A stretch of 64,000 nucleotides of DNA from Macrostomum lignano (Eukaryota): positions 25,357 through 89,356 of the forward strand of contig NIVC01003589.1 of assembly GCA_002269645.1 (NCBI GenBank), written 5' to 3'. Both the position numbers and the translations under genes were made by a program. This document shows, piece by piece, positions 1 to 60,870 of the stretch. Positions within the stretch are counted from its first letter, which is position 1. Every line of letters begins with the position of its first letter. The notes under the pieces were generated by a model. That model worked only from the letters and a program-made list of their open reading frames with translations. It was not told where the DNA came from and searched no databases.

Positions 1-74
1 AAAAATAGAATGAGCTCGGGAGAGCGTAGAGCTAGTTGCGGAGGCTAGAGAAGCAGTGCAGAACTCAGATCACC

Positions 75-353
75 CACCTCAAAATTTGAAACCAGCGGTT
101 TCATTTTCAGAGGTGGCTGTTTGACTAGGAGAGCTTAGAGAGAGCTAGTTGCGAAGAGAGGCACCCAGAGGACAGGCTTGGAATGAGAGGCGGTGGGGCA
201 AGACGGGTGAGAGAAGGGCTGGCCTGAGAGTTGGTCTACCCAGACCCCCCGGCCCTCTCTGGGGGTTGGGAGGCTAGAAAAAGAAAGACACAAGCGTCTT
301 TAGGGGATCACCCACCTCAAAATTTGAAACCAGCGGTTTCATTTTCTGAGGTG
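75..353. repeat. Two copies (75-115, 313-353) of a 41-bp imperfect palindrome CACCTCAAAATTTGAAACC-AGC-GGTTTCATTTTCTGAGGTG
   Basis: Read directly; five more copies at 58863-59592. Confidence 0.9.
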
Positions 354-496
354 GCTGTTTGACTAGTTGTGGAGGCTAGAAAAAAAGATACATGCAGAAC
401 TGGGCGGGGTGTTCAGTGTGGTGGGACTGGGGAGAAAAAGCAGGCGCTCACCCAGAAACCTTTTATATTGTTGCAAAGTTTAGACCCTGCACATAC

Positions 497-9671: not shown

Positions 9672-9684
9672 TTTTAAATAAACA

Positions 9685-14938: not shown

Positions 14939-15034
14939 TTGACTTACTTGACTTAGCTGCAGGGCTGTCCCGGGGGGACACAGCGGGAAGGCGCAAACGC
15001 CCATTCCGCTAATCCCTGAACGGCCGACGCGTCG

Positions 15035-18162: not shown

Positions 18163-18164
18163 AC

Positions 18165-21100: not shown

Positions 21101-21868
21101 CAGAATGAAGTCCTTGCCATCAGCTCCTGTGCAGCTGAGCTCCACTGCAAGGACTTCAAGGACAGTAGAATCTTCTTCCACTCTGACAGCCAGGCCGCTT
21201 TACAGGCCCTGTGTCACACCACTACGAACTCCCGAACAGCCCGCGACTGTATCGGGCAGCTCAACAAGCTGGCTCGGAGGAACACCGTCCGGCTCACGTG
21301 GATCCCAGGACACGCCGGCTTCAAAGGTAACGAGCTCGCCGACTCCCTCGCTAAGGCGGGCTGTTCCGGCTCGCCCCTTGGCCCCGTGCCCCTGGCCCCC
21401 ATCCCCGCCACAGTCATTAATCGTCAGATTAACGACTGGGCGGACATCCTGCACTTGCGCAGATGGGATGGTATCTCCAACTGCCGCCAATCTCGTGCGG
21501 CAGTGCCCAATCCGTCCCTCAAGCTGCGGAGAATCCTTTTGAACCAAAATCGAAAAGATATCCGCGCTCTCACTATGACCTTCACAGGTCACGGTTGCTT
21601 TGCCAGGCACTGCTTCCTCCGATGTGTTTGCCGGAGTGAACTCTGCCCCTTCTGCAGCCTCGAGAATGAAGATGCCAAGCACTTCGTCTGCTACTGCCCG
21701 GCCTTCAACCGAGACCGGCTCAACCACCTCGGGCCCAACCCGTCCCTGGACGACGTTTGCCGGCCCGAGAACATCCCACGGCTCATCCGGTTCCTCCGGG
21801 CCACCAAGCGAGCCTCCGTCTTCCCCACCGAAGACAACGCTGCAGACAGGACCGGCAGACCTCCCTGA
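18165..21868 (+). pseudogene. LINE ORF2: APE endonuclease, RT, RNase H, zinc knuckle; one frameshift near 19560-19595
   Basis: QVNLQH, IQEPW, GDINAHH, SDHKFI; KSPGPDG, FRPISLTS, QGGVLSP, YADD; FTDGS, SDSQAAL, WIPGH...GNELAD; CPFC...H...C. Confidence 0.95.
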
Positions 21869-21982
21869 CCGGCCCCGCGCCCTAGCCTATGCGGGTCTTT
21901 CAGGGATTAGCGGAATGGGCGACGCTCGCCTCCCCGCTGCGTCTTCGGACCGCCCTGCAGCTAAGTCAAGTAAGTAAGTCAA

Positions 21983-24504: not shown

Positions 24505-25983
24505 ACTGTATTAAATGCAATTGTCTGGCTAGAGGCCCGGGCCATCAAGGAGACTTGGACAGCAAATCGTCCTCGTCCCAGGCCGTTGGGGCTTGACTGG
24601 GAGATGGGAGTTGGTCGACGTCCATTGCCTCCTCACCCCCACCAGCCCCCCCCCCTCAGCAGAGTCCTCAGGCTCCGATTGACAGGATGGAGGAAGCTTC
24701 CTCATCTGCATCTTTGCCTTCAGACCCCACCAGGGTGGCCGAGGAGAGCTCGGATTCCGAAGACCCGGCCTCGTCCTCAACTCCTTCTCCGGCTGGCAGG
24801 TTCGGTTCTCGGGGCTTGGCCGGAGCCGTTACCGCGGTGGCCGAACTGCTGCTAGCAGAGGGGCGAGATGCAGCTTTGGCTTTGGGATCGGCTTGCGCCT
24901 TTCCTTGGGCCTTAGACTGCGCCCGCTCTTGCCGGAGATGCCGGGGTTGGCAGAAGCCCTCCCTTTGGCAGACTTTCCTCGGCGCATCTTGAGCTTGAGG
25001 GCACCCAGCTTGAAAGAGGATCCATCAGGGTACCGACTCGCCCAAGCGTTGGAAAGGCCGAGGACAATTGAGTTGCCCGTCTCCCCCCTGCGGACTTTGC
25101 GGTGATACACCAGTCCACTAGCAGGGAGGTCGGGTTCAGACGCAGTAGGACCCGGCGGATAACGTCAGGTCCAGCTGCGGCGCTTTTAGCAGGGACAAAC
25201 ACCACATAGGGTATTGTCTTTGGACGCTGGCCTTCGCGAAGAAAAAGAGCTCCGCCAAGGTCAGCATCCAAGGAGACCGTCAGAAGCCGCTGGAGCAGCT
25301 GCTGAGCATCCTCCTCACTGCTGGGAGCAATAAAAACGAATGTGCTTCGCAGCACCATCCGCTCGATGCCGATGGAGATTCCCTCCTCGACAGTCAGCTC
25401 AATCAGATAGGAGTCAACAGCACTCCACACTTTTTGAAGCTGACTAGTGGTCCAGTCCTGGTCGCGACCTTGAATGATCACTCCCGGGATTTTGGCCTTG
25501 GCCTTCGCCGCAAAGGTAGCTCCTTGTTGGCAAGGAACCTGGTTGTTGCTGCTGGTTGTTGGTTGTTGGTTGTTGCCAAGAAACCTCCTTGTTGGCAGTG
25601 GCCATTTGTTGCGCCGTGGTTTTGGCCTCAGCAGCCGCAGCAGCATCTCCAGGGAGCGCCGCCGCTGAACTACTGGAGCTTCCACCGGCCGGCCCGTCTG
25701 GTTGCTTTGGGACGCCAGTCGCTTCAGTATTCATGCTGGACGCCGCCGCTTTGGCCCCTGCAGCTCCCTTCTTGGCCTGCCTTTTGGCGCGTTGCTTAGC
25801 GCGTTTGCGCTCAAGCCGAGCCCGCTGAGCTTCGTCGGATCTGCCAGATTTGGCCGGTCCTTTAGGCTCAGAGCTCGCGGTTCCCTTAGATCCACCAGCA
25901 GAGCTGGCAGGTCTTTGGGTACTTTGAGTTTGGTAGCTCTGGTCGGATCTGCCAGCAGAGCCAGCCGGTCCTTCCTTTGCCAC
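24500..25983 (-). pseudogene. Outer LOA ORF1, frameshifted
   Basis: ATFAAKAK and RPKTIPYVVFVPA correspond to YASKVK and RPKTIRHRIWVPA of the inner ORF1. Confidence 0.8.
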
Positions 25984-26626
25984 AGATGAATCAGTCGGTT
26001 GGGATCTGCCAGCATGGCCGGCCGGTCCTTCGGACTGAGGTTGGGGTTTAGAAGGGTCCCCGTCCCTAGAAATAGGGTTTTATCCATAGTCGGCTCGAAG
26101 GCCATGATAAAGGTTGGTGGGCTACCCTCGAAGGGGCGCGGTACCCACCCGGCCGCTCCACCTGACCGGGCAGTAGGCCAAAAAAACCCTCAAGGCTGGC
26201 CCGACACCAGGAGGGGGACCGCTTGCGACCGGACTACTCCCCAGCCTTCCAACCCATCGGTACGGTCGAAAACCTTAGGCATTAGATTTACCCCGTTGAG
26301 CAGTACCACAGCCTGCGGATTGGCGAGCCAGACCCGCATACCCAAGTTCGGCAAAAGCCACTGGATGGGTCACCAGCGCCGGTGCCCAGTCTGTCCAGCA
26401 GCCCTAGGGTCTGCCTTGAACACACGCGGGTACGAGTACCCTAGGTCGACTTGCGAGACAGCGTGGGGGGGGTCTGCGGCTGCCAGAGGCAAATAGAGGG
26501 TGCAGACGTCCCACCAGCCTTGACCTGCTGAAAATAGGGGCAGGCGTGAAGCATCGCAGACCTTAGCGCATGGGCCTAGTCAGTCTCATACTTCAGTGGC
26601 ATGCTGAATACGCCTTCGCGCGCCTC

Positions 26627-28050
26627 GTTTTTGAGTTTGAGTTTCTGGCATGATTGAGCATTCGAAATCAGCATATACAACAAATGGGAGCTTCTCTATT
26701 TTGTGATATTTCTTAAACCGGAGATACTTCTCTTCAGCTGAAGGAAGAGAGCAGTTGGTTGGGTGATCTTCACAGGATAATTCATGCTCTGCTAGTTTTT
26801 CAAAGCGCTCAGGTCCACTGTAATGTTTAGGGCACAAGCGGCAGATGGCAACAGCCTCGTGATGATTATTCAACTGCTTGTGAATGAGTCTTGAAAGATC
26901 TTTAATCCAAACATAGTGAGCCTCCTCTAGTAAATTACCAATCACTAGAAGATCCACTTCAGTCCGCCTTTTCCCCTCGGGATCTAAAACGTCTTTGCTA
27001 CATCTGACCGGTTGAACTATCTTAGTTTTTTTCACTCCACTCAAAGACTGTGATTCTAATTTTGTTATTAAACACTTCTTCTAGCTTTGGGATCTGAGAG
27101 ATCGCCAAGCCTCCTTTGTCAAACCTGATTCTCTTCTTTTCGCATTTATTGAGATGGCAGTGTTGAAATAATTTTGATAAATTGTAGTTCTTTTGGGGTG
27201 TGTGAAGGACACTATCATGAAGAAGTGCAGAAAGAACTGCCCATAGAGCACAGCAATTGTCTTTATTTTTAACATTTATGCAAGCTTTTTTACCGGCTAG
27301 CTTATGCGGGAGCTCTATATAAGAGGAGGCTTTAAGTGGGTCATATTTCATGACCATGACAGTCGCTCTTTGAATCCCTCCTACGACCCATCCGGAACCT
27401 CTGGATGTAAACGCTTCAATTTTCTTATTGACATCTTGAAGGAAAGGATCCAGTGTGTCTGTAGGGGTGAATGGCTTTGCCTTTGTTGTCATGTAATACT
27501 CGAGATGCTCAGTGGGTTTTGCAGGCATATAAAACGCAATCTTGAATGATATCTGTAGTTTAAAAGTCTTGCGTGTTTTGAGTGTGTGATCAACAACTGA
27601 TTGGATGCTGTCTTTATAGTTGTAGATTTTTGCGGTGGTATCCTTAATTGGGATTGTGTACTCTATGTAATGTTCTGTAAACTTCCTCTGTGCAAAATTG
27701 ATCTCTTCAGTGGCAATCTCCGACTCTTTTAATTGGATTAATTGCTCTAATTTCTCTTGTTCCTGCTTATTTTGTGGGTACTTTGCTTTTTCACCAGTGA
27801 GAGTTTCGTATTTGTTAACTAAGTTGCGACTCCTCTCTTTGTGTTTCTTTTGCAGGACTTTTTATAGGCGCATACTGGTTGAATTCTAATTGATTGATGA
27901 TTTCCAACTGTTTTTCATAGCTTCCCAGGTGACCAGGGTCGGTGTTAAACTTTATTACATACTTCTCTCAGTAAATTACTTTTTTTGAAATGAGACGCCT
28001 TTTGAAAAATAATTGTTGACTAAATCTTTTGCTGGATTGGCTTTTGGCAT
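26627..28050 (-). pseudogene. pPolB: pPolB N-terminal region of copy B
   Basis: ORFs 27022-27528 and 26586-27044 nearly identical to copy A 3303-4700. Confidence 0.93.
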
Positions 28051-29131: not shown

Positions 29132-29555
29132 GACGGGAAGGGTTTAACTATTATTCTCAGCCTTTGCCAAACGCGACAGCTGCATTTAAAAAGTTTAGAA
29201 GCAGATGGAGGTATGTGGTTGATCGACTGCTATTTGCTGAGGGAACGTAGCCCTCTAGTGGATTTCGCTTTGCTATGAATTTTTTCAACACAATCTTAGG
29301 AATGGAAAAAGTGGGGTTGGGAGTCTTTGCTCGTTTTGCTGGTGTTAGGTGCTTGCAGAGAGAGGGTGGGGGGTGGCTTGATCGATCGATTGCAACAGCT
29401 AGCAACAGAAAGTTCGCGTACATGTAGATATGTACATTTGAAAACGTTTTTAGCTCTATATCTTCACTCGCATTATGCACTGAGAAACAGAAGCAACGGA
29501 TTATAGTTTTTTATGTGTAACTACTTTACGCTTCTGCTGCTCTACCGAAACCGAA

Positions 29556-30152
29556 ATGGCTTCTAGTTCGCCTATGGATGTCGATTGGCGTATAAAGCTG
29601 TCTGGCGAAACAGCGAAACGGAGACTATGCGAGGTCTTATCTGAGACTTTAGCAGAAATCAAGGATCCAGTTAGAGCTGCGGAGAAAAGACAAAAGATCG
29701 CAGAATTTTTCGGGCTTAACGAAGAGTCGCTGCAAATGGAAGTCCTCACTCTAACGCGGCGGCAGATGAAGGAGGCGAGCGATCGCAAGGCGGCGCTTGA
29801 TGCAAAGCGGCGAGATAAGCGCAAAGAAGACTTCAAACAGAAGCTCATCGCCTCACGAATTCCCCAAGCGGATGTTGGGAACCCTGCCGGTGATGAAGGC
29901 GGTGATGTGGTAGAGCGTCTGCAGTGCGCTCTGCTTCGTCTGAAAAGGTCGCAGAAGAGTGGTCTGCATCATGCGCTCCAATGTGGAAAAATCTTGTTGA
30001 AATTTAAAGCCAGTAACAAAAAATACGCTAGAAAGGCACGAAAACAGCATTATGACTATCTTCTTGCTCGAGTTAGCCTCAAGGTTTCATCAGCAAATCT
30101 TTATATGAAGTTTTTTAAGCTGAAAAGTGGAACGCTAATATGTCAATATTAG
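29556..30152 (+). CDS. Variable-slot protein, copy B allele (198 aa, C-terminus possibly truncated)
   Basis: Open frame between PLA2 and TIR; ALQCGKILLKFK...SSANLYMKFFKL. Confidence 0.6.
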   Translation: MASSSPMDVDWRIKLSGETAKRRLCEVLSETLAEIKDPVRAAEKRQKIAEFFGLNEESLQMEVLTLTRRQMKEASDRKAALDAKRRDKRKEDFKQKLIASRIPQADVGNPAGDEGGDVVERLQCALLRLKRSQKSGLHHALQCGKILLKFKASNKKYARKARKQHYDYLLARVSLKVSSANLYMKFFKLKSGTLICQY

Positions 30153-30206
30153 TTGAAATCCTTGAGGATGATCAGTCATGGAAGCAACTTGTTTGAAAAA
30201 TAGACA

Positions 30207-30480
30207 CTCTAGCCTGCTTCGGATTGGTCAGAAAAAGCCAACGCGTTGGCTTTTTTTCCTTTTGCAAGAGCAAACGAAAGATTTTTTATAGAAAGCGCTA
30301 GCCTGCTTCGGTTTGGTCAGAAAAAGCCAACGCGTTGGCATTTTTCCTATTGCAGAACACAAGAGAGAAATAGTTGTAAATGGTATAGTAATAATTTTTT
30401 TGTAAAATAATTTTGTAGTATACGGACGCTCTAGCTTGTTTTCGATTAGCCAGAAAAGGCTAACGCGTTAACATTTTTCC
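30207..30480. repeat. Three dispersed ~55-bp repeats with palindromic core AAAAAGCCAACGCGTTGGCTTTTT
   Basis: Perfect 24-bp palindrome at 30232-30255; variants at 30321-30345 and 30454-30478. Confidence 0.88.
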
Positions 30481-30628
30481 TATTGTGGCACCAGCTGTTT
30501 GTGACATGTTATTTCGGATATGCTATTTACTCAATTTCCTAAATAAAATGTAACGGACGCAATCTTACAATCAGCTTTGCTGATATTTATTCAAACGAGT
30601 TTGTCCATGTGTTGATTTATTCTTGAAA

Positions 30629-30870
30629 TGGTAATTAGCACCTGGATCCAGGCGAATCGCCTGATCTAATTTTTGAATAAGCCAAAAGACTTTATTCCGC
30701 ATTATCCAAAGGAGGACAGATGTTGGTAGAGAAACCAAATCCGGTGAAAAGAGTTGTATTGAGTAATAAGGAGATTCACGAGATTGTGATACAATTTGAG
30801 ACTGAAGATGGGGTGGGTGTTGATTTCAACGGTGAAGAGTTTGTATTGACGTTGATCATTGAGAGAATGT
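30629..30870. pseudogene. Penton fragments: inverted 5' piece (30629-30673) and 3' end (~30708-30870)
   Basis: Match 11761-11808 (reverse complement) and ~12355-12518. Confidence 0.8.
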
Positions 30871-30876
30871 AAGAAA

Positions 30877-31116
30877 TCACAATTGCCTAATGATTTCTGC
30901 AAAGTTATAGTAGCTGTCGTAATCTTTTACGTATGTTACTCCGTATTTAAGAAACCAGTGTCTTTGGAGAGCTAGATTAATATTAGGGACATTGATATCA
31001 ACGCCGGGCCAATATTTTCTCATGTACTCACTGCATTCCTTCTTGCACTGGTACTTACTCTTGTAATTAGGCTCGTGCGCTTTGTAATAAGAACCTGGAG
31101 AGACAACTGGAAACAT
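30877..31116 (-). CDS. TIR 80-aa ORF, copy B
   Basis: MFPVVSPGSYY...YNFAEIIRQL. Confidence 0.75.
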   Translation of the reverse strand: MFPVVSPGSYYKAHEPNYKSKYQCKKECSEYMRKYWPGVDINVPNINLALQRHWFLKYGVTYVKDYDSYYNFAEIIRQL

Positions 31117-38226: not shown

Positions 38227-39110
38227 AGTAGAATGCATGAGGGAGCTTCTGGGACAAAATTTTTCACATCCTCCATAATCCCAATTAATCCATCCATATT
38301 ATCCCTGACAGAATCAGAAGAAAGGGGGGTCGCACTCGCTCACAAAACGTCCTCCATAATCCCATTAAATCCATCCATATTATCCCTGACAGAATCAGAG
38401 CATAACAGGTGTCCTAGTTGCTCCGAAAACTTCGAACATAATCCTCTTAAATCCATCCATATTATCCCTGAATCAGAGGGTCCTACTCGCTCACAAAACG
38501 TCATCCATAATCCCCCTAACCTATCCTCCTTCCTCCACGACAGAATCAGAGCATAACAGGTGTCCTACATAATCCACTGACATCCACCCATAGCATATTC
38601 GAAACAATCAGAAAATAATCTGCATTCTTCTCCCCACATTTAATCCACAACATGCTACCAAATCCCTAAGACTTTAAATCCCCAAACCTAGGGTCCTTAC
38701 CCTTTGAAAAAATCTAAATTCTCAATAAAAATGCTTCCAGTTGTCTCCCCAGGTTCTTATTACAAAGCGCACGAGCCTAATTACAAGAGTAAGTACCGAT
38801 GTAAACTAGAACGCAGTGAGTACATGAGAAAATATTGACCCGGCGTTGATATCAATGTCCCTAATATTAATCTAGCTCTCCAACGACACTGGTTTCATAA
38901 GTATGGAATAACCTACGTAAAAGATTACGACAGCTACTATAACTTTGCAGAAATCATTAGGCAATTGTGATTTCTCACATTCTCTCAATAATCAACGTCA
39001 ATACAAACTCTTCACCGTTGAAATCAACACCCACCCCATCTTCAGTCTCAAATTGTAGCACAATCTCGTGAATCTCCTTATTACTCAATACAACTCTTTT
39101 CACTGGATCT
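38227..39110. repeat. Left TIR of copy D including the 80-aa ORF pseudogene (38731-38970) and ~140 bp of penton 3' end
   Basis: Inverted homology to ~12380-13463; TGG to TGA stop in the ORF. Confidence 0.85.
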
Positions 39111-39265
39111 TCTTTTCAAAAGATTACGACAGCTCCTATAACTTTGCAGAAGTTATAAGGCAATTGAAGCTTACTAAAAAACATACTGAGTTCATTTAGT
39201 CACAAGTATATTTACATAAAACAGGAGGAAATTAGGTGGAAAGAGCAGACACTGAGTGTGCAGGG

Positions 39266-40006
39266 CTATCCGGCAGAGAATTTCCTTCGCGACGTGCGAG
39301 CTAGTTGCACGGCTGGAAATGAAAGAACAAGATATTGTAGATCCTCGCACAATCCAAAATCGATATTATTCGGATCCAGAAGAATATTGATTTTCCTCCC
39401 GCTCATTTCGTGTACAGCAAATTGTATATGGCAATAGCCCCATAATTCTGCCTGCTTGCCAGACTCTAGCAGCCCCGTCCCGTCCATGGCTCCCGTCCTG
39501 TCCCTCTCTCCATCTCTTGCTTGCCAGTGCCTCAATTGTAGCACAATAGAAGCTAGAATGCCCTTGCCTCTTGGACTTGGAGTTGTAAACTATAGACTCG
39601 AGAGAATGCATTGCAGTAAAGAAATTTCTTTTTATTTCTTTTTCATTTTCCAGTCCAGCTAGGGCAGAGTCTAGGGCAGATGATATAGATTTATACTTTG
39701 GGTATACTAGCAGATCCTCGCACAATCCAAAATCGATATTATTCGGATCCAGAATAATATTGTTTTCCTCCCGCTTATTCCGTGTACAGCAAATTGTATA
39801 GGGCAAAGTTCTTCCAGGGTTGATAAAGATTTATACTTACTGGGTATACGAGCGCGTATTGTGTCTTTAACCGGTTCCACCAGCTGCTGCCACATTTGCA
39901 GCCCCAGGGATAACAACGTTACCATGAGCACCTTCTGGCATTTGATTGGCTTGCGGAACTGTTGGGTCAGTCCAAATATTTGCGTCGCGTTGGTAGCGGT
40001 ACTCAC
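39266..40006 (-). pseudogene. Variable-slot protein, copy D allele, partly duplicated and frameshifted
   Basis: ELWGYCHIQF...EDLQYLVLSFPAVQLA; ~95-bp direct duplication at 39338-39435 and 39711-39805. Confidence 0.5.
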
Positions 40007-40477
40007 TTTAAAATGAGAGTAGCGTTATCCAACAAGAAGGAAACTTCGGTCGAGTAGAACGTAATTTTTTGTGAACTAAAAACAAAGATTTAATTAAAAT
40101 AAGAGATTTTTCAATTCTTAACACAGGATAGAATTTCAGTAAGTAAAAAATGAATAAACTTAAAACATAATGAAATCAGCAGCCACAACGGTGCAGTATC
40201 GTGCGTGACGAAGAACGCGTGCGAGCAAAATGAGCTGAATTTTCTTGCTTGCTTTAACTAGCTTCCGAGCGATCAATTCCCTCCACCCGCTTCCTTCCTT
40301 CCGGTTGTCCAAGCGGAAAGGAATGCACGCGTGGAACTTGTACATTCGAAAAATAGATAAGAGGGCTATGCCCCCCTCAGCAATAGCAGTTACCCCACCC
40401 CCTTCTGCTTCTCAACTTTTCAAATGCAGCTGTCGTGTTTGGCAAGGGTTGAGAATAATAGTTAAACGCTTCCCGAC

Positions 40478-43117: not shown

Positions 43118-45539
43118 CCCTTATATGCCGGGTGGCTAGCAGAGCTGACCATAGCCATAGAATAGAAGGTGACGAGAAAAAAAATTGGTAGTCTATGGCC
43201 AGTGAGGCGCAGAATTGCAGCTCCTTTCCTGCCGAACATGTTCAGCTGAGCTGACCATGGAATAAATAGCGCACTCACTCAGTCTGTAGCACTCTGTAGC
43301 GACCACTAGAGCAACTTTCATGTACTAACAATGGCACAGAAGAAAGATGCAGTTTATTGTTGAATTAATTTCGAACTATAAAGTTAAAGGGAAAGTTAAA
43401 GTTAAAGTTCAAGCAAAAGAAGATATTTGTCCAAAAGCAACAAAAAATTTATGATTTTGAGACGCAACTACATGTACGCTCGTATAGTAGCATATAATAA
43501 TACAAGGAACAATATTGTGGTAGAGTGCCGCAGTTGGACATTTAATTATTTTTGTCTTAACATAAAGGTAAAAAATTAATAGTCAATGCCGAATACAAAC
43601 GCGAATTATATAGTACGGCTGGTGAAAGGAGTTCTTTAATTCAGTGATTCACATGCCACCGTTCAAAGCAGGGACTTGGGCACAGTCCAGGTGCATTCGG
43701 ACACGCACTGCAGCAGAACACGGTGCGCTTCGCAGTGCCGTTGCGGTAGCACACGCGGCATTGCTTCACCGGCCTCGGGCACGATTCCCTCGGAGGCAGC
43801 TTTGATGGAAAGTGCTGCTGAGCTGCGGCCGCCGCTGGTTGCTTAGCTGCCGTTCGCTGTCTTCCTGGTCCCGTGGAGTCAACCAGTAGGGTGATACAGC
43901 TCTCCAGGAATTTGAAGAACTGCAGCCGGCCACCGTGCTTTGAGTATACAACCCATGCATTGTGTACAAGCAGCAGACAGAGATGAAACCCCAACTTATG
44001 AAACCACTTGTAGGTTTTGCGGCAGCTGTCGTACGGTTTCAGCATGGCATCGAGTCGGTCAACGCCTCCCATGCAGCGGTTGTACAGCAGGTTCGAGGCG
44101 CTTTTCTGCACTTGCACAGCTTCACCATTCTTGCGAATTCGGTTCGTCGCTACTTTCTGAGCTGAGCCGTGGGTGTCGATCATGAAGAATGTTTTCAAGC
44201 CGCTTTCCTTGCGCTCCAGGATTTTCATGGCCAGCACTGGCAGCTTCCTCATGAAAACTACGTCATTTAACGGCACCTGCTGACTGCGCAATGCCAACGG
44301 CACTCCACGGTCGGCTCGAACAGTTGCTGTCAGCAGTGTGCTGCGTTCGTACAGAAAAGTCGCAAGCCGTACTGAGGCAAACCACTTGTCGACGAAAAGG
44401 TGATAGCCGAAACCGAGCAGGTCCTTGCAAAGGTGCACTACGATTTTCTCGCTTAGAGACAGCTGGTCACAACCGAGGTCGTCGCCAAAATGAGAGTTCT
44501 CTTCAGCAGTCGAATGTACTAGAAAGTTATACAGGTAGCCAGATACAGACTCACAGGCGCAGTACATTTTAATTCCAACTCTGGCTCTCTTCGATGGGAT
44601 GTACTGCCTAAACTGAAGGCGCCCCTTGTACAGAATCAGGGACTCGTCGACGCTGACCTGCTGCTCCGGCTGGTACACGTTCGCGCAGAGCTGCTGAGCC
44701 AGACGGAGCAGCGGCCGAATCTTGTGCAGTGGGTCGTTCGAGGCGGGTGCTCGTGAATCGTAGAAACGAAGGAAGGCCAGCAGCTGCTTGAATCGGTCAC
44801 GGGTCAAGCCATTGGGCGATTGAAAAAACGGAGTACTGTGAATGACACTGGTGCTCCAGTAATCATGCAGTTCCGGCTTCCGTGAGATGCCCATGAACAG
44901 GTACATACCCAACAGCTTGGATATCTCACTGCGGTTTGTGTCCTTCCATGACTTCAGCAAGCTCGAAACATCTTCTCCATCATGTGTCGCCTGCTCATAC
45001 TCAGCCCAAGCTTTTGCGTTTGTCCACTCCACGATCTTATCCAGCAGCTCATCGGTTAGTAGAAAATATTGGATGTCTTCACGGTCTTCGCGAAGGACAA
45101 TGCTGGGGTTTACACCCGAAATTCCAGTGAAACTGGGGCCGTCTTCAACAATGTCTTCGCCTGGCTCCACAAACTGCCAATCGTCTTCTACTTCGCTGAT
45201 AGTGACCGACTCAGACGACTCGGAGTTCTCCGCTATTCCAGCGTCACTTTCGGAGTCGGAAGTCAACAGAATATCCATATTTGGATTGATTTGAATTGCA
45301 TGAATAGAATTGTACAGAATTTGGCACAGCCCTTAATATACTAAAACCGGGCTGTCTATGGCCAGTCTTGTACAGTTTTGATAAGCGTGTGTGCAACCCA
45401 TTCCAAATGTACATTCTCCTTCAACCCTAGATTAGACCAGCGATGGCTGGCTTATCGGCAGGAGTGGCAGTGCAATTCAGTTCACTGAAAACTTGAAATA
45501 GTCTATGGTCAGCTCTGCTGACCATGCCGGCAGGAACGG
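43118..45539 (-). mobile_element. piggyBac-family DNA transposon
   Basis: TTAA at 43114-43117 followed by CCCTT; imperfect TIR (GCTAGCAGAGCTGACCATAG versus CTATGGTCAGCTCTGCTGACC) ending ...CAGGAACGG at 45539. Confidence 0.88.
43641..45278 (-). CDS. piggyBac transposase, 545 aa, intact
   Basis: DDD triad VSVDES / FVDKWFAS / MGGVDRLD; C-terminal Cys-rich domain CRVC...CCSAC...LCPSPCF..WH. Confidence 0.95.
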   Translation of the reverse strand: MDILLTSDSESDAGIAENSESSESVTISEVEDDWQFVEPGEDIVEDGPSFTGISGVNPSIVLREDREDIQYFLLTDELLDKIVEWTNAKAWAEYEQATHDGEDVSSLLKSWKDTNRSEISKLLGMYLFMGISRKPELHDYWSTSVIHSTPFFQSPNGLTRDRFKQLLAFLRFYDSRAPASNDPLHKIRPLLRLAQQLCANVYQPEQQVSVDESLILYKGRLQFRQYIPSKRARVGIKMYCACESVSGYLYNFLVHSTAEENSHFGDDLGCDQLSLSEKIVVHLCKDLLGFGYHLFVDKWFASVRLATFLYERSTLLTATVRADRGVPLALRSQQVPLNDVVFMRKLPVLAMKILERKESGLKTFFMIDTHGSAQKVATNRIRKNGEAVQVQKSASNLLYNRCMGGVDRLDAMLKPYDSCRKTYKWFHKLGFHLCLLLVHNAWVVYSKHGGRLQFFKFLESCITLLVDSTGPGRQRTAAKQPAAAAAQQHFPSKLPPRESCPRPVKQCRVCYRNGTAKRTVFCCSACPNAPGLCPSPCFERWHVNH

Positions 45540-49511: not shown

Positions 49512-50669
49512 AGTAGAAGGCATGAGGGGGCTTCTGGGACAAAATTTTTCACCTCCTCCATAATCCACCTAAATCCATCCATATTATCCCTGACAGAATC
49601 AGAAAAAAAGGGGGGTCGCACTCGCTAACAAAACGTCCTCCATAATCCACCTAAATCCTTCCATATTATCCCTGACAGAATAAGAAAAAAAAGGGGGTCG
49701 CACCCGCTAACAAAACGTCCTCCATAATCCCATTAAATCCATCCATATTATCCCCGAAAGAATCATGAAAAAGGGGAGGGGCCGCACTTGCTCCGAAAAC
49801 TTTAATCCCATTAAATCCATCCATATTATGACTGACAGAATATGGGAATATGGGTCCACTGATACCTGTTATGCTCACTGACACAGACATAATCCACTGA
49901 CATCCATCCATAGCATCTTCGAAACAATCAGAAAAAAATATGCATTCTTCTCCCCACATTCAATTCGCAACATGAAACCAGATCCCTAAAACTTTAAACC
50001 CCCTAACCCAGGGTCCTTACCCTTTGAAAAAAAAATTAAATTTTCTCTAAAAATGTTTCCAGTTGTCTCTCCAGGTTCTTATTACAAAGCGCACGAGCCT
50101 AATTACAAGAGTAAGTACCGATGCAAACTAGAATGCAGCGAGTACATGAGAAAATATTGGCCCGACGTTGATATCAATGTCCCTAATATTAATCTAGCTC
50201 TCCAAAGACACTGGTTTCATAAGTATGGAGTAACCTACGTAAAAGATTACGACAGCTACTGTGACGTAGCGAGTTCGAGATGTAGTCAGCGATTAATTAA
50301 TTATTAGTTGTTTATTTATTAGTTATTTATTTATTGGTTAGCTAGTTCAGTTATTAGTAGTGTTGACACGCATGGTACGAGACAAAATGCCGAGTTGAGG
50401 AGAGTACAAAAAACGAGCGCGAGGTAACAATTTAAATTGTCAAGATGTCTATCAAAAAAGTAATAACAACTTGGACTGAAATAAATAAAACTTCAAGTAC
50501 ATTTTTTTCTAAATAAATTACATTGAATTAATAGCTGGGAAACCTGCAAATTAATCAACTACAATAATTTGAAGTAATAAAAACTCAGATAGAAACTAAA
50601 AATTTAAGATGCTAACGACATCGTCACAGCTACTATAACTTTGCAGAAATAATTAGGCAATTGCGTTAG
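49512..50669. repeat. Left TIR of copy E including the 80-aa ORF (50053-50669) split by a solo LTR
   Basis: Tandem subrepeats; ORF resumes YNFAEIIRQL after 50633. Confidence 0.87.
50260..50628. mobile_element. Solo LTR (369 bp)
   Basis: TGTGACG...CGTCACA termini; 5-bp TSD GCTAC (50255-50259, 50629-50633). Confidence 0.85.
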
Positions 50670-50691
50670 GCGTGTGAAAGTACTAACATTT

Positions 50692-51080
50692 AAAAATGGC
50701 CCCACTGGTAGCCATTCTAAGCGTTCTCATTGGTTGATAAGATTATACTAAAGAGAGAGTGGAAATGACTTGTTACTAAAAATAACTCAAGACAGATATT
50801 GCGATCGTGTCAATTTAAAATTGGCTGGCCCCACTGGTAGCCATTCTAAGCGTTCTCATTGGTTGATAAGATTATACTAAAGAGAGAGTGGAAATGACTT
50901 GTTACTAAAAATAACTCAAGACTGCTAATACGGTCGTATTTAAAATTGGCTGGCCCCACTGGTAGCCATTCTAAGCGTTCTCATTGGTTGATAAGATTAT
51001 ACTAAAGAGAGAGTGGAAATGACTTGTTACTAAAAATAACTCAAGACTGATATTGCGATCGTCTCAATTTAAAATTGGCT
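50692..51080. repeat. Three tandem ~125-128-bp repeats
   Basis: GGCCCCACTGGTAGCCATTCTAAGCG...AATAACTCAAGAC units start near 50692, 50816, 50941. Confidence 0.92.
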
Positions 51081-51099
51081 AAGTCATAACCCGTAACCG

Positions 51100-51738
51100 T
51101 CACTGTCTCCACATCGCCGCATCCGCCTGGTAGCGAACCTCGTCCCGAATGAGCTTCATATTTTCCAGAACGAAGCTAACTGGTACGGCGCAGCGTTGTA
51201 AGGCCGGAAATTCTGTCAATAAGTCGTACACTCTCAACTTCTTGTCCAAAGTCTGCCTCGATACTTGTAGATTAAGCCGTCGAATTATATTCCGAACCGA
51301 CTTTAGTGTACGTTTGAGCCGGTGAATGATGGAGCCGATGTAAAATGACACAATTAATGTGCGCTTATCATAAAAATTCTCATGCTGAAATAATTCCACC
51401 AGCATGTTCTGTACAGTGGGTAGAACAGTGGGTAGATGACGAAAGTTCAACGCGTGCATACTTTCCTCGATAACTGATAGCTCCCTTGTTGGCGCTTGAA
51501 CTTCGACTCCATACGAAGCACGAAGGCGCTGGAAAACAGCAGCTACTCGTGCTTCGTAGGTGGAAATATCGCGTTGGGTTTGTCCTTCCATGCGAGCCAA
51601 ATCGTGCTGTATTTCCTCTTCTTTGAAATTTTCAAACAATTGTTGGAGTCCATCTCTCTGCTCTAAAGGTGTTAAATTAATCAAATCGTTCACAAATGCG
51701 TTAAGTCGAGCGGTTCTAACTGTAATTCTTTCAGCCAT
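51100..51738 (-). CDS. Variable-slot protein, copy E allele (212 aa, intact)
   Basis: Open frame; FYIGSIIHRLK...YDLLTEFPALQRCAV. Confidence 0.72.
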   Translation of the reverse strand: MAERITVRTARLNAFVNDLINLTPLEQRDGLQQLFENFKEEEIQHDLARMEGQTQRDISTYEARVAAVFQRLRASYGVEVQAPTRELSVIEESMHALNFRHLPTVLPTVQNMLVELFQHENFYDKRTLIVSFYIGSIIHRLKRTLKSVRNIIRRLNLQVSRQTLDKKLRVYDLLTEFPALQRCAVPVSFVLENMKLIRDEVRYQADAAMWRQ

Positions 51739-52429
51739 TGCGTTTTCTAATAGGAATTGAGTGAAGAGGGCTGGCTGGCTTCCGCCTATACTTAAAAACC
51801 GTCATGTAGGGTTTGAGGTGGTAGTGGTTGCTGCGCCGCGCCAATATTTTGGCAATTGGAAAGGAAAGCCGTCTCCACACTAGGTAGTCTTTCGTGCTAT
51901 GAACTGACTGGTTGATTGGGGTTGCCAAAGCGGAAAGGAAAGCATGCGTGGAAGTTGTACATTCGCAAAATCGATTAAAAGGCTACGCTCCTTAAGCAAA
52001 TAGCAGTCGATCAACCACATAACCTCTCTCTGCTTCTCAACTTTTCAAATGCAGCTGTTGCGTTCGGCCAGGGCTGAGAATAATAGTTAAACCCTTCCCG
52101 ACTCAAACGCCTCTCTCTACTCCCCCATATCTTCATACCGTAGAGACCAACTAGGCGGGCCACATTCCGAGGCCAAATCGGCGGGCCGAGGCCAACTCGG
52201 CGGGCCAACTGGCCTCGCAATTTGGCCAATAATCAATATCAATCAAACATACACAGTCCATGCATGCTAATGGCGGCGAAGCGGTTGACTTTTTATTTTC
52301 TGCTCTTAGCTCTCTGGAGAATGAGAATCTCTCTTGTGCGCAACTCTTTAGGGAATAAAAAACTGTACTTACTCAAATCCACACTTGCTCATGCCCTTCC
52401 CGATTCAAGCGCCCCTTTCTACCCCCAGC

Positions 52430-54557: not shown

Positions 54558-56910
54558 ATGCCAAAAGCTAATCCAGCAAGAGATTTAGTCAACAAATATT
54601 TTTCAAAAGGCGTCTCATTTCAAGACAAAAGTAATTCACTAAGAGAAGCATGCAAACAAAAGTTCAACACCGACCCTGGTCACCTGGGAAGCTATGAAAA
54701 ACAGTTGGAAATCATCAATCAATTAGAATCAAACCAGTATGCGCCTATACAAAATCCTGCAAAGGAACACCAAGAGAGGAGTCGCAACTTAGTTAACAAA
54801 TATGAAACTCTCACTGGTGAAAAAGCAAAGTACCCACAAAATAAGCAGGAACAAGAGAAATTAGAGCAATTAATCCATTTAAAAGAGTCGGAGCTTGCCA
54901 CTGAAGAGATTAATTTTGCACAGACGAAGTTTACAGAACATTACATAGAGTACACAATCCCAATTAACGGCACCAACGGTACCACCGCAAACATCTACGA
55001 CTATAAAGACAGCATCCAATCAGTTGTTGATCACACACTCAAAACACGCAAGACCTTTAAACTACAGATATCATTCAAGATTGCGTTTTATATGCCTGCA
55101 AAACCCACTGAGCATCTCGAGTATTACATGACAACAAAGGCAAAGCCATTCACCCCAACAGACACACTGGATCCTTTCCTTCAAGATGTCAATAAGAAAA
55201 TTGAAGCGTTTACATCCAGAGGTTCCGGATGGGTCGTGGGAGGGATTCAAAGAGCGACTGTCAGGGTCATGAAATATGACCCACTTAAAGCCTCCTCTTA
55301 TATAGAGCTCCCGCATAAGCTAGCCGGTAAAAAAGCTTGCATAAATGTTAAAAATAAAGACAATTGCTGTGCTCTATGGGCAGTTCTTTCTGCACTTTTT
55401 AGTGTCCCTTTACCACCCCGAAAGAACCTCAAATTATCAAAATTATTTTAACTACTATCTCATTGAATGCGAAAAGAAGGGAATCAGGTTTGACAAAGGA
55501 GGCTTGGCAATCTCTCAGATCCCAAAGCTAGAAGAAGTGTTTAATAACAAAATTAGAATCACAGTCTTTGAGTGGAGTGAGAAAACTGAGAAAGTTCAAC
55601 CGGTCAGATGTAGCAAAGACGTTTTAGATCCCGAGGGGAAAAGGCGGACTGAAGTGGATCTTCTAGTGATTGGTAATTTACTAGAGGAGGCTCACTATGT
55701 TTGGATTAAAGATCTTTCAAGACTCATACACAAGCAGTTGAATAATCATCACGAGGCTGTTGCCATCTGCCGCTTGTGCCTTAAGCATTACAGTGGACCT
55801 GAACGCTTTGAAAAACTAGCAGAGCATGAATTATCATGCGAGGATCACCCGACAAACTGCTCTCTTCCTTCAGCTGAAGAGAAGTATCTCCGGTTTAAGA
55901 ACTATCACAAGATGGAGAAGCTCCCATTTGTTGTATATGCTGATTTCGAATGCTCAATCGTGCCAGAAACTCAAAAACAAACTCCAACTCAAAAACAAAC
56001 TCCAACTCAAAAACAAACTCAAACTCAAAAACATATCCCCAATTCAGTAGCATATGCCTTTATTAATACAAAAGGACTTGTTGAGTATAATTATTTCTTT
56101 GGAGAGCAGTGTGTGGAGCAGTTTATTGCCAGAATGTTAGAGTTGCAAAAATTGATTAGCACCCTTCAACCTGTTCCAATAATGATGACTGAGGAGGATG
56201 AAAGCAATTTCCTATCAGCAACTCATTGCCACATCTGCAGGAAACATTTAACTTGCACTAATATTAAAAACCCCACCGTTAGGGACCACTGCCACTTTAC
56301 TGGGAAATTTAGAGGTGCAGCGCATAACACCTGTAATCTAAAGCTAAAATCGAACATTCATGATCTAACGATATTTTGTCACAACGCAAAGAACTATGAC
56401 ATGCATTTAATAGTTGAAAAAATCGGCATGATTCCAGACATACACCTTGATTGCATCGCAGAGAACAAGGAGAAGTTTAAGTGTGTTGATATTAAACAGG
56501 ATAATTCGGGTACAGGTAAAATAAGACTGAAGGATTCATATCAATTTCTAGCTGCCAGTCTAGACGAACTAAGCAAGAATCTAAAAGATGAACAATGTAC
56601 ATATACAAAGATGTTTGCAAGTAAAATTAACAACACTGATGAATCATTTAAACTCCTGAGAACCAAAGGCTTCTACCCCTATGAAAATATTACTGGGTAT
56701 CACGTATTTGAAGAAGGTTTACCACCACAGGAGAAGTTCTTTTCAAAGCTAACAGACTCTGGAATCTCTGACAAAGACTATGAGCACGCGAAGCATGTCT
56801 ATAATTACTTTAATTGTCAAAACTTCTTCCAGTATCACCTGCTTTACCTCTTCACAGATGTGTTTCTGCTGGCTGATGTGTTTGAAACCTTCAGATGCAC
56901 CTGGTACACA
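54558..56910 (+). pseudogene. pPolB: pPolB 5' two-thirds, copy E, one frameshift near 55400, cut by copy F
   Basis: ORFs 54519-55451 and 55345-57183; PolB stops at TWYT then AGTAGAAGG. Confidence 0.94.
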
Positions 56911-57599
56911 AGTAGAAGGCATGAGGGGGCTTCTGGGACAAAATTTTTCACCTCCTCCATAATCCACCTAAATCCATCCATATTATCCCTGACAGAATCA
57001 GAAAAAAAGGGGGGTCGCACTCGCTCACAAAACGTCCTCCATAATCCCATTAAATCCATCCATATTATCCCCGACAGAATCATGAAAAAGTGGAGGGGTC
57101 GCACTTGCTCCGAAAACTTCGAACATAATCGTATTAAATCCATCCATATTATCCCTGACAGAATCAGAGCAGGTGTCCACTAACACCTGTTATGTTCACT
57201 GACACTGACATAATCCACTAACATCTTCGAAACAATAAGAAAATAATCTGAATTCTTCTCCCCACATTCAATTTGCAACGTGCTACCAGATCCCTAAGAC
57301 TTTAAATTATCAGCGCAGGGTCCTTACCCTTTGAAAAAAAATAATAAATTCTCAATAAAATGTTTCCAGTTGTCTCTCCAGGTTCTTATTATACTCAGCC
57401 TAATCCATTGTACAAATCCAAGTACCAATGCAAACTAGAATGCAGCGAGTACATGAGAAAATATTGGCCCGATGTTGATATCAATGCCCCTAATATTAAT
57501 CTAGCTCTTCAAAGACACTGGTTTCATAAGTACGGAGTAACATATGTAAAAGATTACGACAGCTATTATAACTTTGCAGAAATCATTAGACAATTGTAG
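56911..57599. repeat. Left TIR of copy F
   Basis: Inverted homology to 12523-13463. Confidence 0.88.
57360..57599 (+). CDS. TIR 80-aa ORF, copy F
   Basis: MFPVVSPGSYYTQPNPLYKSKYQC...YNFAEIIRQL. Confidence 0.75.
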   Translation: MFPVVSPGSYYTQPNPLYKSKYQCKLECSEYMRKYWPDVDINAPNINLALQRHWFHKYGVTYVKDYDSYYNFAEIIRQL

Positions 57600-58148
57600 A
57601 ATGTCGTTACGATACGCTTTAAGACTTTAAGACTGCAATAATAGATATTTTTACGCATGGTATTTTGCTGTGTGGCGGGTGGGTGATAGCGGAATGGGTA
57701 TGGCAGCTGTTTCTGGTCATAGCGCGAGCGGCGTGTGCAGCATAGAGAAAAAAGCTTTTGCCCAGCTCAACCCTAACTAGCTCAGAAGATCCCTTGCCTA
57801 GCTTCAGAAACGCCCATTTAGTTCCTTGTTTAAACCCCCAGCCTTTTCAACCCCCAGCTCTTTCAGCAGTCTTCCTAGATCTTTCCCAGGCAACCCCAAT
57901 CAACCATTAATAGAAAATACTGGCTATAAGTAGAAAATCTGCGGGTTTCCCTTCTAGAATTCGAATTCTAGAAAATTCTAGAACAAAAAGAGAATCCGTG
58001 GATTCCCGAGCCCACACCAATGGTATATATACAGCCGATTCACACCGCCCCTCGCCTCACCCTGCCTGCCCCGCCTCGCCTCACCCCGCCTCAACTCGCT
58101 GAGCCAGCAACTTCTTATTTTTGACTAGCTTAATCTCTGGATCTTGCC

Positions 58149-58772
58149 ATGGATGAAGAAATGCAAGCAGGCAACAACGTTTACATCCAAAATCTGGAGA
58201 ACTTCATCAAGGCGGTTTTTTCTAGTAAAGATCTCGACAACTGGAATCTTTGGGCCGATAAATACAATGCAATTGCTCGGTCACCAATCGTGAAGCCAAC
58301 TATCAATGGACGGCTAGCGAAAACTACCGACAAGCAATTACAAATCGGCAAGGCTCTGGACGAGTTGCGCACGGCCTATAAAACCAACAGTGAGCCTGTG
58401 CCAGTGCATTCTCTAGAAGAATTTATGCAGGGAACATTTACGATCGACGCAGTGCTTGTACAGATTGCCAACCTTCATAAGCTAGTTGAACGGTATGGTA
58501 AGCATGGCTTTGCAAACGGCCTACAGCTCGGCAGGATCTCTCTGAGAATGGAGCGGGTTCTCAGTAAGGAACAGTTCAACGAGCTGAAAAGACGTGCACC
58601 GTTCACCAGCCAGTGGACCAACTTTCTGATGAAATTGGCTGACCAAGCTGAGAAATATCCGGTGCTACAAAGATCTGCAATGTCCCTGCACAAGCTGAAG
58701 TCGATGATTGCATACTTGCCAGAGGCCCTTGCGATGCTGCAACAGGAAGTGGACGAAGGCTTGTTGTTTTAA
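58149..58772 (+). CDS. Variable-slot protein, copy F allele (207 aa, intact)
   Basis: GCCATGG start context, TATATATA at ~58024; LQLGRISLRME...AEKYPVLQRSAM. Confidence 0.75.
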   Translation: MDEEMQAGNNVYIQNLENFIKAVFSSKDLDNWNLWADKYNAIARSPIVKPTINGRLAKTTDKQLQIGKALDELRTAYKTNSEPVPVHSLEEFMQGTFTIDAVLVQIANLHKLVERYGKHGFANGLQLGRISLRMERVLSKEQFNELKRRAPFTSQWTNFLMKLADQAEKYPVLQRSAMSLHKLKSMIAYLPEALAMLQQEVDEGLLF

Positions 58773-58862
58773 CTTTTAAATTACCTATCTATTGTTTATT
58801 TAGCAACTCATGAAGCTACAATAATAGCAAGTTATCCTTGGATAGTTACTAATGTTGACACC

Positions 58863-59592
58863 AACCTCAAATTTTGAAACCACTGGTTTCATTTTCTGAG
58901 GTGGGTGTTTGATTAAAATAGCAAATTTGCTTGAGACAGTGTAGACAAATGTTTCTGCTGGAAGCAGTGCAGAACTCAGATCACCCACCTCAAAATTTGA
59001 AACCAACGGTTTCATTTTCTGAGGTGGGTGTTTGACTAGGAGAGCGTAGAAGAAAACGGAGGGATCACCCAGAAGGTTGTACCTTGTAGAGTGTAGACGT
59101 AAGTTCTAAAAATAAAACCCATACAATGTGTTGGGAGAGCGTAGAAGAGATCACCCACCTCAAAATTTGAAACCAGTGGTTTCATTTTCTGAGGTGGCTG
59201 TTTGACTAAGCTCGGGAGAGCGTAGAGCTAGTTGCGGAGGCTAGAGAAGCAGTGCAGAACTCAGATCACCCACCTCAAAATTTGAAACCAGCGGTTTCAT
59301 TTTCTGAGGTGGCGCGGCGCCCCTGTGCAAAGAGAGCCCAGTGCTCTGGCCCGGACTGCTGGGGAAGGGAAAGGGAGAGGAGCTCAAGGGGAAGGAGATT
59401 TCAGTACAACGGGAGACTCAAAATTCCCAGGCGCCCCTCTACCCCCCAGCGCGAGATCGCTAGTGTTATGTTTGACTACAAATAGAATGAGCTCGGGAGA
59501 GCGTAGAGCTAGTTGCGGAGGCTAGAGAAGCAGTGCAGAACTCAGATCACCCACTCAAAATTTGAAACCAGCGGTTTCATTTTCTGAGGTGG
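58863..59592. repeat. Five copies of the 41-bp hairpin repeat with modular spacers
   Basis: Copies near 58863, 58986, 59156, 59271, 59551; loops ACT, AAC, AGT, AGC, AGC. Confidence 0.92.
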
Positions 59593-59762
59593 CTGTTTGA
59601 CTAGGAGAGCGTAGAGCTAGTTGCGAAGAGAGAGAGGCACCCAGAGGACAGGCTTGGAATGAGAGGCGGTAGGGCAAGACGGGTGAGAGAAGGGCTGGAG
59701 AAAAAGCAGGCGCTCACCCAGAAACCTTTTATATTGTTGCATAGTTTAGACCCTGCACATAC

Positions 59763-60064
59763 GGGTTATAGCCTAGTGGTTAGGGCGTCGGACTCACTAC
59801 TTGAATGAAGGTTGAGGGTTCGATTCCCGATCCCACTGCAACAATCTGTGTCTTTGAGCAAGGCACTTTACTCCGCATTGCTTCAGTTCACCCAGCTGTA
59901 AAATGGGTGCCAGCATTAGCTGGGTAATTGAGGGTGTGTGTGGCGACCCCCAGTCCTTGGACTGAACAGCCGTACGCAGCCTTAGATGCCGCGCAATAGC
60001 TGCGGCTGAGCTGTCGATTGCACATCTGCCATTGGGCAGTTGTAATCAATTATTATTATTATTT
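59763..60064 (+). mobile_element. CORE-like SINE, same position as in copy A
   Basis: A and B boxes, CORE-like block, (ATT)n tail, same flanks as 497-802. Confidence 0.8.
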
Positions 60065-60389
60065 ACCTACGATAGGCATTCTGTCTTCTGCTGCATGCTC
60101 TGTTGTTGCCACGTTGCTTACCACATGAAAAACTATAATAAACTAATAAACTATATAGCGACTATAATCTGTCGCTACAGTCCTTCAGTTGTTTATCAAT
60201 GTAAACTGTTCAGCAGTCTTTCTAATTCTTTATTTGGCGTGCGCAATACAAAGAAAGAAAGGAAAGGAAAGGAAGCACGCGTGGAACTTGTACATTCGCA
60301 AAAGCTGCGCTCCCTCAGCAAATAGCAGTTACCCCACCCCCTTTCAAAATGCAGCTGTTGCGCTTGGCTGCGAATAATCTTTCCCGACT

Positions 60390-60870
60390 CAAGCGCCTCT
60401 CTCAACCCCAGCTCTTTCAGCAGCTTCCTAATACCTCGTTTGGAGCACACAAATAAACCCCGCTCCGAGCACTCCGCCACACCCGCCCTCTCTCCCAAAC
60501 ACCCACCTTCGCCTTGAACCCCAAACCCAATCTTGTCTTACTAAAAATAACAGCTTTAACTAGCTTCGAGCGATCGACTCACGAAATCCGCTTGAAGCCC
60601 TATATTGTCTAGTCTCTTAAGCATTTCTTTGTCCCAGCGATTCTTCTCCTCAGGAAAATCTCTATATTTAACATCGTGCCACATGCAGACAGAGTCTAGC
60701 TCATTCACAGGCTCATGCCCAGGATTTGGGTTGTTGTTTCCATCCAGCTGTATTTCAAGAGGATTCAAAGGCCCGCAATATTTATAGCCGGGAAGTGTCC
60801 AGCCTTTGTTTGGATGAGGAAGCTTTTCTATCAGTCCATGTGAATCTATTTTACCACCAGAGCGTTGCAT
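60390..60870 (-). pseudogene. PLA2X-like gene, copy F
   Basis: GYKYCGP, WHDVKY; indels downstream. Confidence 0.85.

Follow-up and report, generated by a model that had tools for sequence, protein, structure and literature searches.

Apparent exchange of gene and repeat-array cassettes at a fixed slot of nested Polinton/Maverick elements in Macrostomum lignano

This analysis concerns a variable slot in mobile elements of Macrostomum lignano. The elements lie in a stretch of 64,000 nucleotides (assembly GCA_002269645.1, contig NIVC01003589.1, positions 25,357 to 89,356 of the forward strand), which is referred to here as the window and to which all coordinates refer unless another contig is named. 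They are of the Polinton/Maverick type, and occur as nested copies inserted into one another. Between the left terminal inverted repeat (TIR) and the PLA2-domain gene of each copy there is a slot at which recombination between Polinton lineages has, by sequence comparison, exchanged entire cassettes. In copies B, E and F a repeat array directly follows the open reading frame (ORF) in the slot, and the array differs from copy to copy. We propose, tentatively and at slightly less than even chances, that the slot is an exchangeable cassette formed by a sequence-specific DNA-binding protein and its cognate cis-acting site.

The variable slot

Comparison of the window with itself gives five nested copies of related elements, named A, B, D, E and F. 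In every pair of copies the sequences flanking the slot share 87–98% nucleotide identity, while the slots between left TIR and PLA2 cannot be aligned. No slot showed nucleotide similarity to another at E<=0.01, save for two trivial stretches, one of 18 nt and one of 38 nt. An earlier reading of this DNA, made from the sequence only, had described closely similar core genes next to slots lacking obvious nucleotide similarity, and this description is borne out.

The slots are 1.2–2.7 kb in size. The slot of copy F (57598..60257) begins where the left TIR ends on its inner side and extends to a conserved boundary block, and those of the other copies are at 50262..51929 (E), 29257..30710 (B, an element that runs leftwards) and 39109..40302 (D). 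The right boundary is sharp and is common to A, D, E and F, the variable slot being ended by the block at 60258..60380 (+ strand); B joins the common sequence slightly later. Copy A starts in the window within its own slot, the window start cutting through its array (1..390, + strand). What remains of the array matches that of F, as does the boundary, and it has exact 18-nt cores of the F type at 74-91 and 312-329. Copy A therefore has an F-type cassette, and the five copies thus carry four cassette types.

The orientation of the cassettes also varies. Relative to the element the gene is sense in F and antisense in B, D and E, as the sequence-only reading had stated. Going inwards from the terminus, the order in E and B is TIR, array and gene, with the gene pointing at the TIR, and in F and A it is inverted, being TIR, gene and array. 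The flanks have diverged by 2–13%, and the proteins differ by ~81% in DNA that cannot be aligned. This excludes drift in place, and the different slots must therefore stem from exchange of cassettes by recombination between lineages.

Two smaller features of the slots may be added. In copy E (50262-50630) the last ~40 nt of the TIR-proximal conserved sequence recur at 50626-50663, past ~370 bp of AT-rich DNA, an indication that a small insertion separates the TIR from the E array. The segment 59740-60030, which lies past the F array and ahead of the boundary block, is 95% identical to 474-768 in copy A, and is found nowhere else in the window. It has a tRNA-like head and the look of a short interspersed nuclear element; ARAGORN calls no tRNA in it.

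Proteins encoded in the slot

The F allele (58149..58772, + strand) is an intact ORF of 207 aa, whose product is acidic in its N-terminal part and has a C-terminal domain that is basic. The E allele (51100..51738, − strand) is an intact ORF of 212 aa and is homologous to it. The two proteins are only ~19% identical and the pairwise signal is weak (blastp E=0.003; Smith-Waterman z=4.1; 1 of 500 shuffles). A profile was therefore built from F and four outside relatives, leaving E out. With hhalign it aligns to E at a probability of 93% (E=3.4e-7, 137 columns), and in an hmmsearch over all 1460 six-frame segments of the window it finds the E ORF at E=4e-7. These results support the view that F and E, though divergent, belong to a single family of helical proteins that had not been described before.

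The other two slots are less clear. The B ORF (29556..30152, + strand, 198 aa) stops short of the C-terminus of the family. It ranks third among the 1460 segments (hmmsearch E=0.03), with homologous columns aligned, and hhalign gives E=0.007-0.028 at a probability of <=5%, which does not confirm the match. A continuation of its C-terminus was sought in another frame, where a short segment was found to be without statistical support. B is only a possible member of the family. The D ORF (39266-39544, − strand, 92 aa) lacks profile support: a search of every frame of the D slot gave no hmmsearch match at E<=20, and hhalign gives E=0.5. The ORF runs through a ~100-bp segment that is duplicated 373 bp away.

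The motifs on which the sequence-only reading had built its case are literally correct, spacings included. They are LQLG-41-YPVLQRSA in F, FYIG-41-FPALQRCA in E and ELWG-39-FPAVQLA in D, with LRxxY shared by F (residue 73) and E (residue 72). Over all six frames of the window the pattern [FY]P[AV][LV]Q is found at three places, each of them in a slot (F, E and D). However, it is only this motif of five residues, defined after the three sequences had been seen, that links D to F and E, and the link is suggestive only. The claim that the slots hold four alleles of one family, for which a profile search had been recommended, is thus upheld for F and E; B matches weakly and D gives no profile match. 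No real ORF is identical between copies, and the F, E and B proteins have no exact database record.

Relatives and predicted structure

A full HMMER scan with F over 1.84 billion cluster representatives gave four real relatives, all of them singletons in a collection of ~15 billion proteins. P0001 (212 aa) is 45% identical to F over its whole length. P0002 (180 aa as called) and the metagenomic P0006 (144 aa) have GT-AG introns, and an exon further upstream encodes their N-terminal part. The fourth, P0003 (104 aa, PAA54076.1), is from M. lignano itself; its gene is decayed, having lost its N-terminal end to a long terminal repeat (LTR) retroelement (5294-9720 of its contig, L005) and having one further interruption. 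Other samples thus contain full-length relatives, at 45% and 40% identity, and two have introns that preserve the frame. Two further matches of the scan, P0004 and P0005, were rejected as repetitive proteins that sum many sub-significant matches. Word-indexed protein searches with F and with E gave no match, and with the family alignment gave P0006 only. A search for related loci with the five-sequence alignment confirmed no metagenome locus.

The contigs of the relatives offered two observations of their own. A 17-nt stretch of the right-boundary block is found exactly in the contig of P0002 (L003, 145-161; search E=0.02), ~370 nt upstream of the first exon; in the window the stretch lies at 52045-52061, 60347-60361, 1086-1100 and 40420-40433. 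This hints that the P0002 gene may also sit in a Polinton slot, but the stretch is oriented, relative to the gene, unlike that in E and unlike that in F. In the M. lignano contig, 23-bp tandem repeats of several variants form very long arrays (L005 14888-18670), which adjoin a diverged pPolB fragment (13917-14364).

The structure of F was predicted with AlphaFold2. From the single sequence the prediction is not usable (predicted local distance difference test, pLDDT, of 40). With an alignment of six sequences it is all-α, with a pLDDT of 80.7 and a predicted template modelling score (pTM) of 0.62, and F and E are thus predicted to be helical, as had been proposed from the sequence. The model has a long helix at 99-137, and the most conserved segment of the family is a helix at 140-149, a turn of four residues and a second helix at 154-169. 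The C-terminal 110 residues have a pI of 9.5-10.2, and the N-terminal part a pI of ~5. The invariant columns of the family are G, I, R and L, and none is an invariant Ser, Thr or Tyr.

Searches of Pfam, PHROG, NCBIfam and PADLOC gave no consistent family match, and a sequence profile search of the PDB gave only noise (E>0.3). Below threshold, E matches HTH_Tnp_Tc3_2_like on the conserved segment (19.8 bits, where the cut-off is 27.2); F matches ARID at E=0.25. The basic C-terminal half, the helix-turn-helix geometry of the model and the sub-threshold helix-turn-helix match together hint at nucleic-acid binding. By all of these searches the slot protein is a family that no current library describes, with four relatives among the 1.84 billion representatives.

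Repeat arrays and their coupling to the gene

In F, E and B the array is found on the 3' side of the gene, in each case between convergent ORFs. The F-type array (58858..59628, + strand) has five imperfect dyads of ~50 bp, at 58858-58907, 58982-59031, 59152-59201, 59267-59312 and 59548-59595, interspersed with short direct repeats. In the first of these units a change in one arm is uncompensated in the other. The E-type array (50697..51080, − strand) consists of three tandem units of 125–129 bp directly 3' of the gene, and the B-type array (30209..30478, + strand), which follows the B ORF immediately on its 3' side, of three units of 48 nt that each include a 24-bp dyad. The statement of the sequence-only reading that a different array follows the gene in B, E and F is therefore accurate. 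In the D slot a segment of ~100 bp is present twice (39339-39434 and 39712-39806) and contains a 38-nt dyad.

Dyad symmetry is significant, compared with shuffled sequences, in the units of F, B and D and in those of a metagenomic relative, L002 (z −2.4 to −6.5, with the F units, folded as single strands, at −4.6 to −6.5). A search of the F array against Rfam gave weak matches to long-hairpin microRNA models, at 24–29 bits against gathering thresholds of 180–230.

The link between gene and array extends to loci outside the window. The window has seven occurrences of the 18-nt core of the F array, in the form found at 58985-59002, all of them in the arrays of A and F (0.01 expected). The independent M. 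lignano locus, of 20 kb, has a single occurrence, which matches the pattern without mismatch (0.00 expected) and starts 10 nt past the stop codon of its F-type homologue. This homologue is only 53% identical to F in its coding DNA, and the rest of its 3' flank cannot be aligned. Only one arm of the dyad is kept there, which points to conservation of the sequence and not of the pairing of a hairpin. In L002 a dyad unit of 45 nt starts 14 nt past the stop codon and repeats 57 nt later, the contig ending inside the second copy. The P0002 locus is known from two independent assemblies, which are identical and both break off 51 nt past the stop codon, in keeping with a repeat boundary.

Taking these loci with those of the window, every evaluable locus therefore has 3' repeats, which begin 14–90 nt past the stop codon, and the F type keeps its array core. 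At the level of sequence, the types of gene and array are shown to be paired for the F type, the single case testable across loci. The proposal of an exchangeable module of gene plus repeats stands to this extent: the slot has sharp bounds, gene and array of the F type travel together as far as the M. lignano locus, and L002 has its repeat 14 nt past the stop. Scans of sequence collections with the 18-nt core gave 111 metagenome and four viral matches, all of them single and none near a family member; by our own estimate about this number is expected by chance.

Upstream of the F gene there is a site resembling a heat-shock element (57966..57983, + strand), 166 bp before the start codon and ~45 bp before a TATA-like sequence (58025-58035). 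The search pattern was taken from general knowledge of the motif, and this is the sole perfect four-unit site in the 64-kb window. The promoter regions of E and B have no such site. Heat-shock elements have been described in some M. lignano LTR retrotransposons, in a study that leaves Polintons unmentioned (bioRxiv 10.1101/2024.12.18.629116).

Function and alternative explanations

We envisage a cassette that comprises its own promoter region, a small two-domain all-α protein and an allele-specific 3' repeat array. The basic C-terminal domain, with its conserved helix-short turn-helix, would bind the repeats of its own array. The array would then be an element-specific cis-acting site, and co-resident elements with different alleles would be spared competition for, or control by, each other's protein. 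What reads the site could be genome packaging or a replication enhancer next to the terminal repeat, which has a reasonable chance though short of an even one. Readers that are individually rather unlikely are episome tethering or segregation, and transcriptional control or immunity.

A wider analogy can also be drawn, with the immunity region of a phage or the incompatibility determinant of a plasmid. A private binding protein and array might determine which of the co-resident elements undergoes packaging, replication, maintenance or silencing, and the diversity might be kept up by competition between elements that repeatedly insert into each other. As an account of animal Polintons this is unlikely as it stands. 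For Polintons/Mavericks we are aware of no description of element-specific recognition or of cis-acting signals such as packaging, origin or maintenance sites, and of no account of how many related Polinton copies coexist and compete in one genome.

Several observations weigh against the idea of a binding protein paired with its own site. The E units have no significant dyad symmetry and fold no better than shuffled sequence, so that the arrays are not built alike. The array abuts the TIR in E and B, yet in F (and A) it starts ~1.9 kb from the terminus. Coupling across loci amounts to one half-site in one decayed locus, with five loci examined. The protein has no recognised DNA-binding domain at a curated threshold, and Foldseek with the whole model, against PDB and BFVD, found no related fold (E>0.7, TM<0.25), so that the fold comparison recommended by the sequence-only reading produced no known fold. 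The profile tests leave B unsettled and D unsupported, which means that one family in every slot is not demonstrated. Finally, the copies lie in a nested and partly broken cluster, and their current function is thus not assured.

A serious alternative, which we judge somewhat unlikely, is that the slot encodes a fast-evolving accessory or host-interaction protein (for example in counter-defence, or as regulatory cargo), and that the repeats are incidental satellite in the sole non-coding spacer of the slot, with no recognition of DNA by the protein. This would fit the failure to find a DNA-binding family at threshold or a related fold, the extreme rarity of the family with its four singleton relatives, and the difference in build between the tandem 125-bp units of E, which have no dyads, and the dispersed dyads of F; subterminal tandem repeats are, moreover, common elsewhere in these elements. 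It does not readily explain why an exact 18-nt array core is kept beside an F-type homologue whose coding DNA has fallen to 53% identity, why repeats lie within 14–90 nt of the stop codon in every evaluable locus, or why four unrelated array types have dyad symmetry. Another alternative, which is quite improbable, is that the arrays act as RNA, as hairpins in or downstream of the 3' untranslated region that serve 3'-end formation or stability or are a source or target of small RNA, and that insulate convergent units. The arrays are indeed always 3' of the gene and between convergent ORFs, the units of F, B and L002 form stable hairpins when folded, and there are the weak matches to long-hairpin microRNA models. 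However, those matches fall far below the gathering thresholds, the E units fold no better than shuffled sequence, the M. lignano locus has a single arm, and the arm change in the first F unit is uncompensated.

Two further explanations are very improbable. The slot protein might be the terminal (priming) protein of pPolB protein-primed replication; we know of no terminal protein identified in Polintons, and the slot protein is small, helical, fast-evolving and encoded beside the terminal repeat of a pPolB element. Against this, the pPolB regions are 92–97% identical and the slot proteins ~19%, a poor fit to a partner that docks to the polymerase; the family lacks an invariant Ser, Thr or Tyr; and the arrays would be left unexplained. 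Equally hard to credit is that the ORFs are chance frames in decayed, unrelated filler, and that their shared pattern is coincidence. This could apply to D, which reads through duplicated DNA and has no profile support, and B is not significant alone, but the significant profile homology of F and E refutes it for these two, and it sits badly with conserved full-length relatives elsewhere, some having frame-preserving introns.

If the proposed pairing of DNA-binding protein and cognate site is correct, the array is a concrete candidate for a cis-acting, element-specific recognition signal, and the pairing would explain the mosaicism of copies that are otherwise nearly identical. Should the repeats prove incidental, the slot would still offer a clear example of cassettes replacing one another at a constant position in a eukaryotic virus-like element.

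The surrounding elements

Each element has TIRs of 0.7–1.1 kb, found in both orientations, with subterminal tandem repeats of 82–84 bp. The termini of F, E and D and the right end of A all begin with 5'-AG. The left TIR of copy F (56911..57597, + strand) starts in this way, and its subterminal tandem repeats are at 56953-57168. In the inner TIR of every copy there is a conserved ORF of 79–84 aa (57360-57599, 50053-50307 and 30877-31116), presumably present at both element ends; it has no Pfam match, and the 79-aa version has no exact database record.

The assignment to Polintons/Mavericks is based on these termini and on core genes. Copy E has a DNA_pol_B_2 domain (PF03175, the pPolB) in the ORF 55345-57183, at 28.4 bits against a cut-off of 25.8, and an rve integrase (PF00665) at 34.7 bits against 32.6; the rve of copy A, at 32.4 bits, is just under the same cut-off. 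An A32-like ATPase is below threshold (20.2 bits, cut-off 22.8). Models of capsid and protease proteins gave no match among the ORFs scanned, and no structure-based search was made for them. The PLA2-domain gene of copy A (1128-1619, − strand) is of the parvovirus type (PF08398, E=8e-14); its homologue in copy F (60556..60870, − strand), which takes its Pfam match from copy A, is the first conserved core gene past the slot. Two further domains of the core genes match above their cut-offs, an adenovirus pX/mu-like domain (2706-3161, + strand; PF05829, 30 bits) and an endonuclease VII-like domain (4567-5193, + strand; PF02945, 25 bits), which lies within the N-terminal part of the pPolB region.

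The nesting can be followed at three junctions. Copy F (left end 56911) is inserted in the pPolB gene of copy E (junction 56910/56911), copy E (left end 49512) in copy D, whose left end is at ~38227 (junction 49511/49512), and copy A (right end 13463) in the pPolB gene of the leftward-running copy B (junction 13463/13464). Two of the three Polinton-in-Polinton insertions are thus within the pPolB of the recipient, at different positions. The elements involved in nested insertions all have different slot alleles, A and F excepted. Not every copy is intact: the pPolB of copy A (3264-6766), for one, has two or more interruptions. Copy B is split by a GC-rich retroelement of the non-LTR type (~14939-26629, ~11.7 kb; ~55–64% GC compared with ~40% around it), which has long ORFs for AP-endonuclease, reverse transcriptase and RNase H. 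Inverted repeats of 290 bp are found in this retroelement at 16260-16549 and 26216-26507. Copy D carries an inserted piggyBac-type transposase (43641-45278, − strand), intact at 545 aa, with DDE_Tnp_1_7 (E=8.5e-70) and a C-terminal zinc finger. Elsewhere in M. lignano, a fragment on contig NIVC01002974.1 has 76–90% identity to part of copy A.

Comparison with known systems

The slot recalls several known arrangements of a protein gene and repeated sites. The defining domains of ParB, adenovirus, hr/Epstein-Barr virus (EBV) and lambdoid systems were sought in it and not found, so that these are likenesses and not memberships. A loose visual resemblance to DUF3102, noted in the sequence-only reading, fell away on testing, none of six family members matching it in a Pfam search at E<=10.

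In the plasmid partition systems SopB-sopC and P1 ParB-parS a gene is followed by repeated and often dyad-symmetric sites, which is the order seen here. The pairs are specific, and this leads to incompatibility between co-resident replicons and favours diversification. The slot differs in that no ParB-type domain is detected in its protein and that it has no partner ATPase or second gene; its host is a eukaryotic virus-like transposon, and binding is only predicted.

The baculovirus hr regions with IE-1, and the family of repeats of EBV oriP with EBNA1, are arrays of palindromes bound by a dimeric viral protein, and they act as enhancer, origin or maintenance elements. The F array, with its imperfect palindromes of ~50 bp in direct repeats, is similar. 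There is no homology, and the array here is allele-specific and is linked to the gene as one swappable unit.

The packaging domain of adenoviruses has repeated motifs beside the left inverted terminal repeat, read by serotype-specific recognition proteins. Adenoviruses have a linear double-stranded DNA genome with protein-primed pPolB replication and are related to Polintons; the repeated sequence lies by the left terminal repeat in E and B, and this lineage has the pX/mu-like domain. Against the comparison, there is no similarity of sequence or fold to adenoviral proteins, and the array of F and A starts ~1.9 kb from the terminus.

The immunity regions of lambdoid phages have their sites at a promoter and not 3' of the gene, belong to bacterial viruses where the host here is eukaryotic, and encode repressors, to whose families the slot protein has no match. 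In other respects the two are alike: in both there are alleles of a putative regulator and its sites, highly diverged or impossible to align, which lie between conserved flanks, are exchanged by recombination and would confer specificity between co-resident elements.

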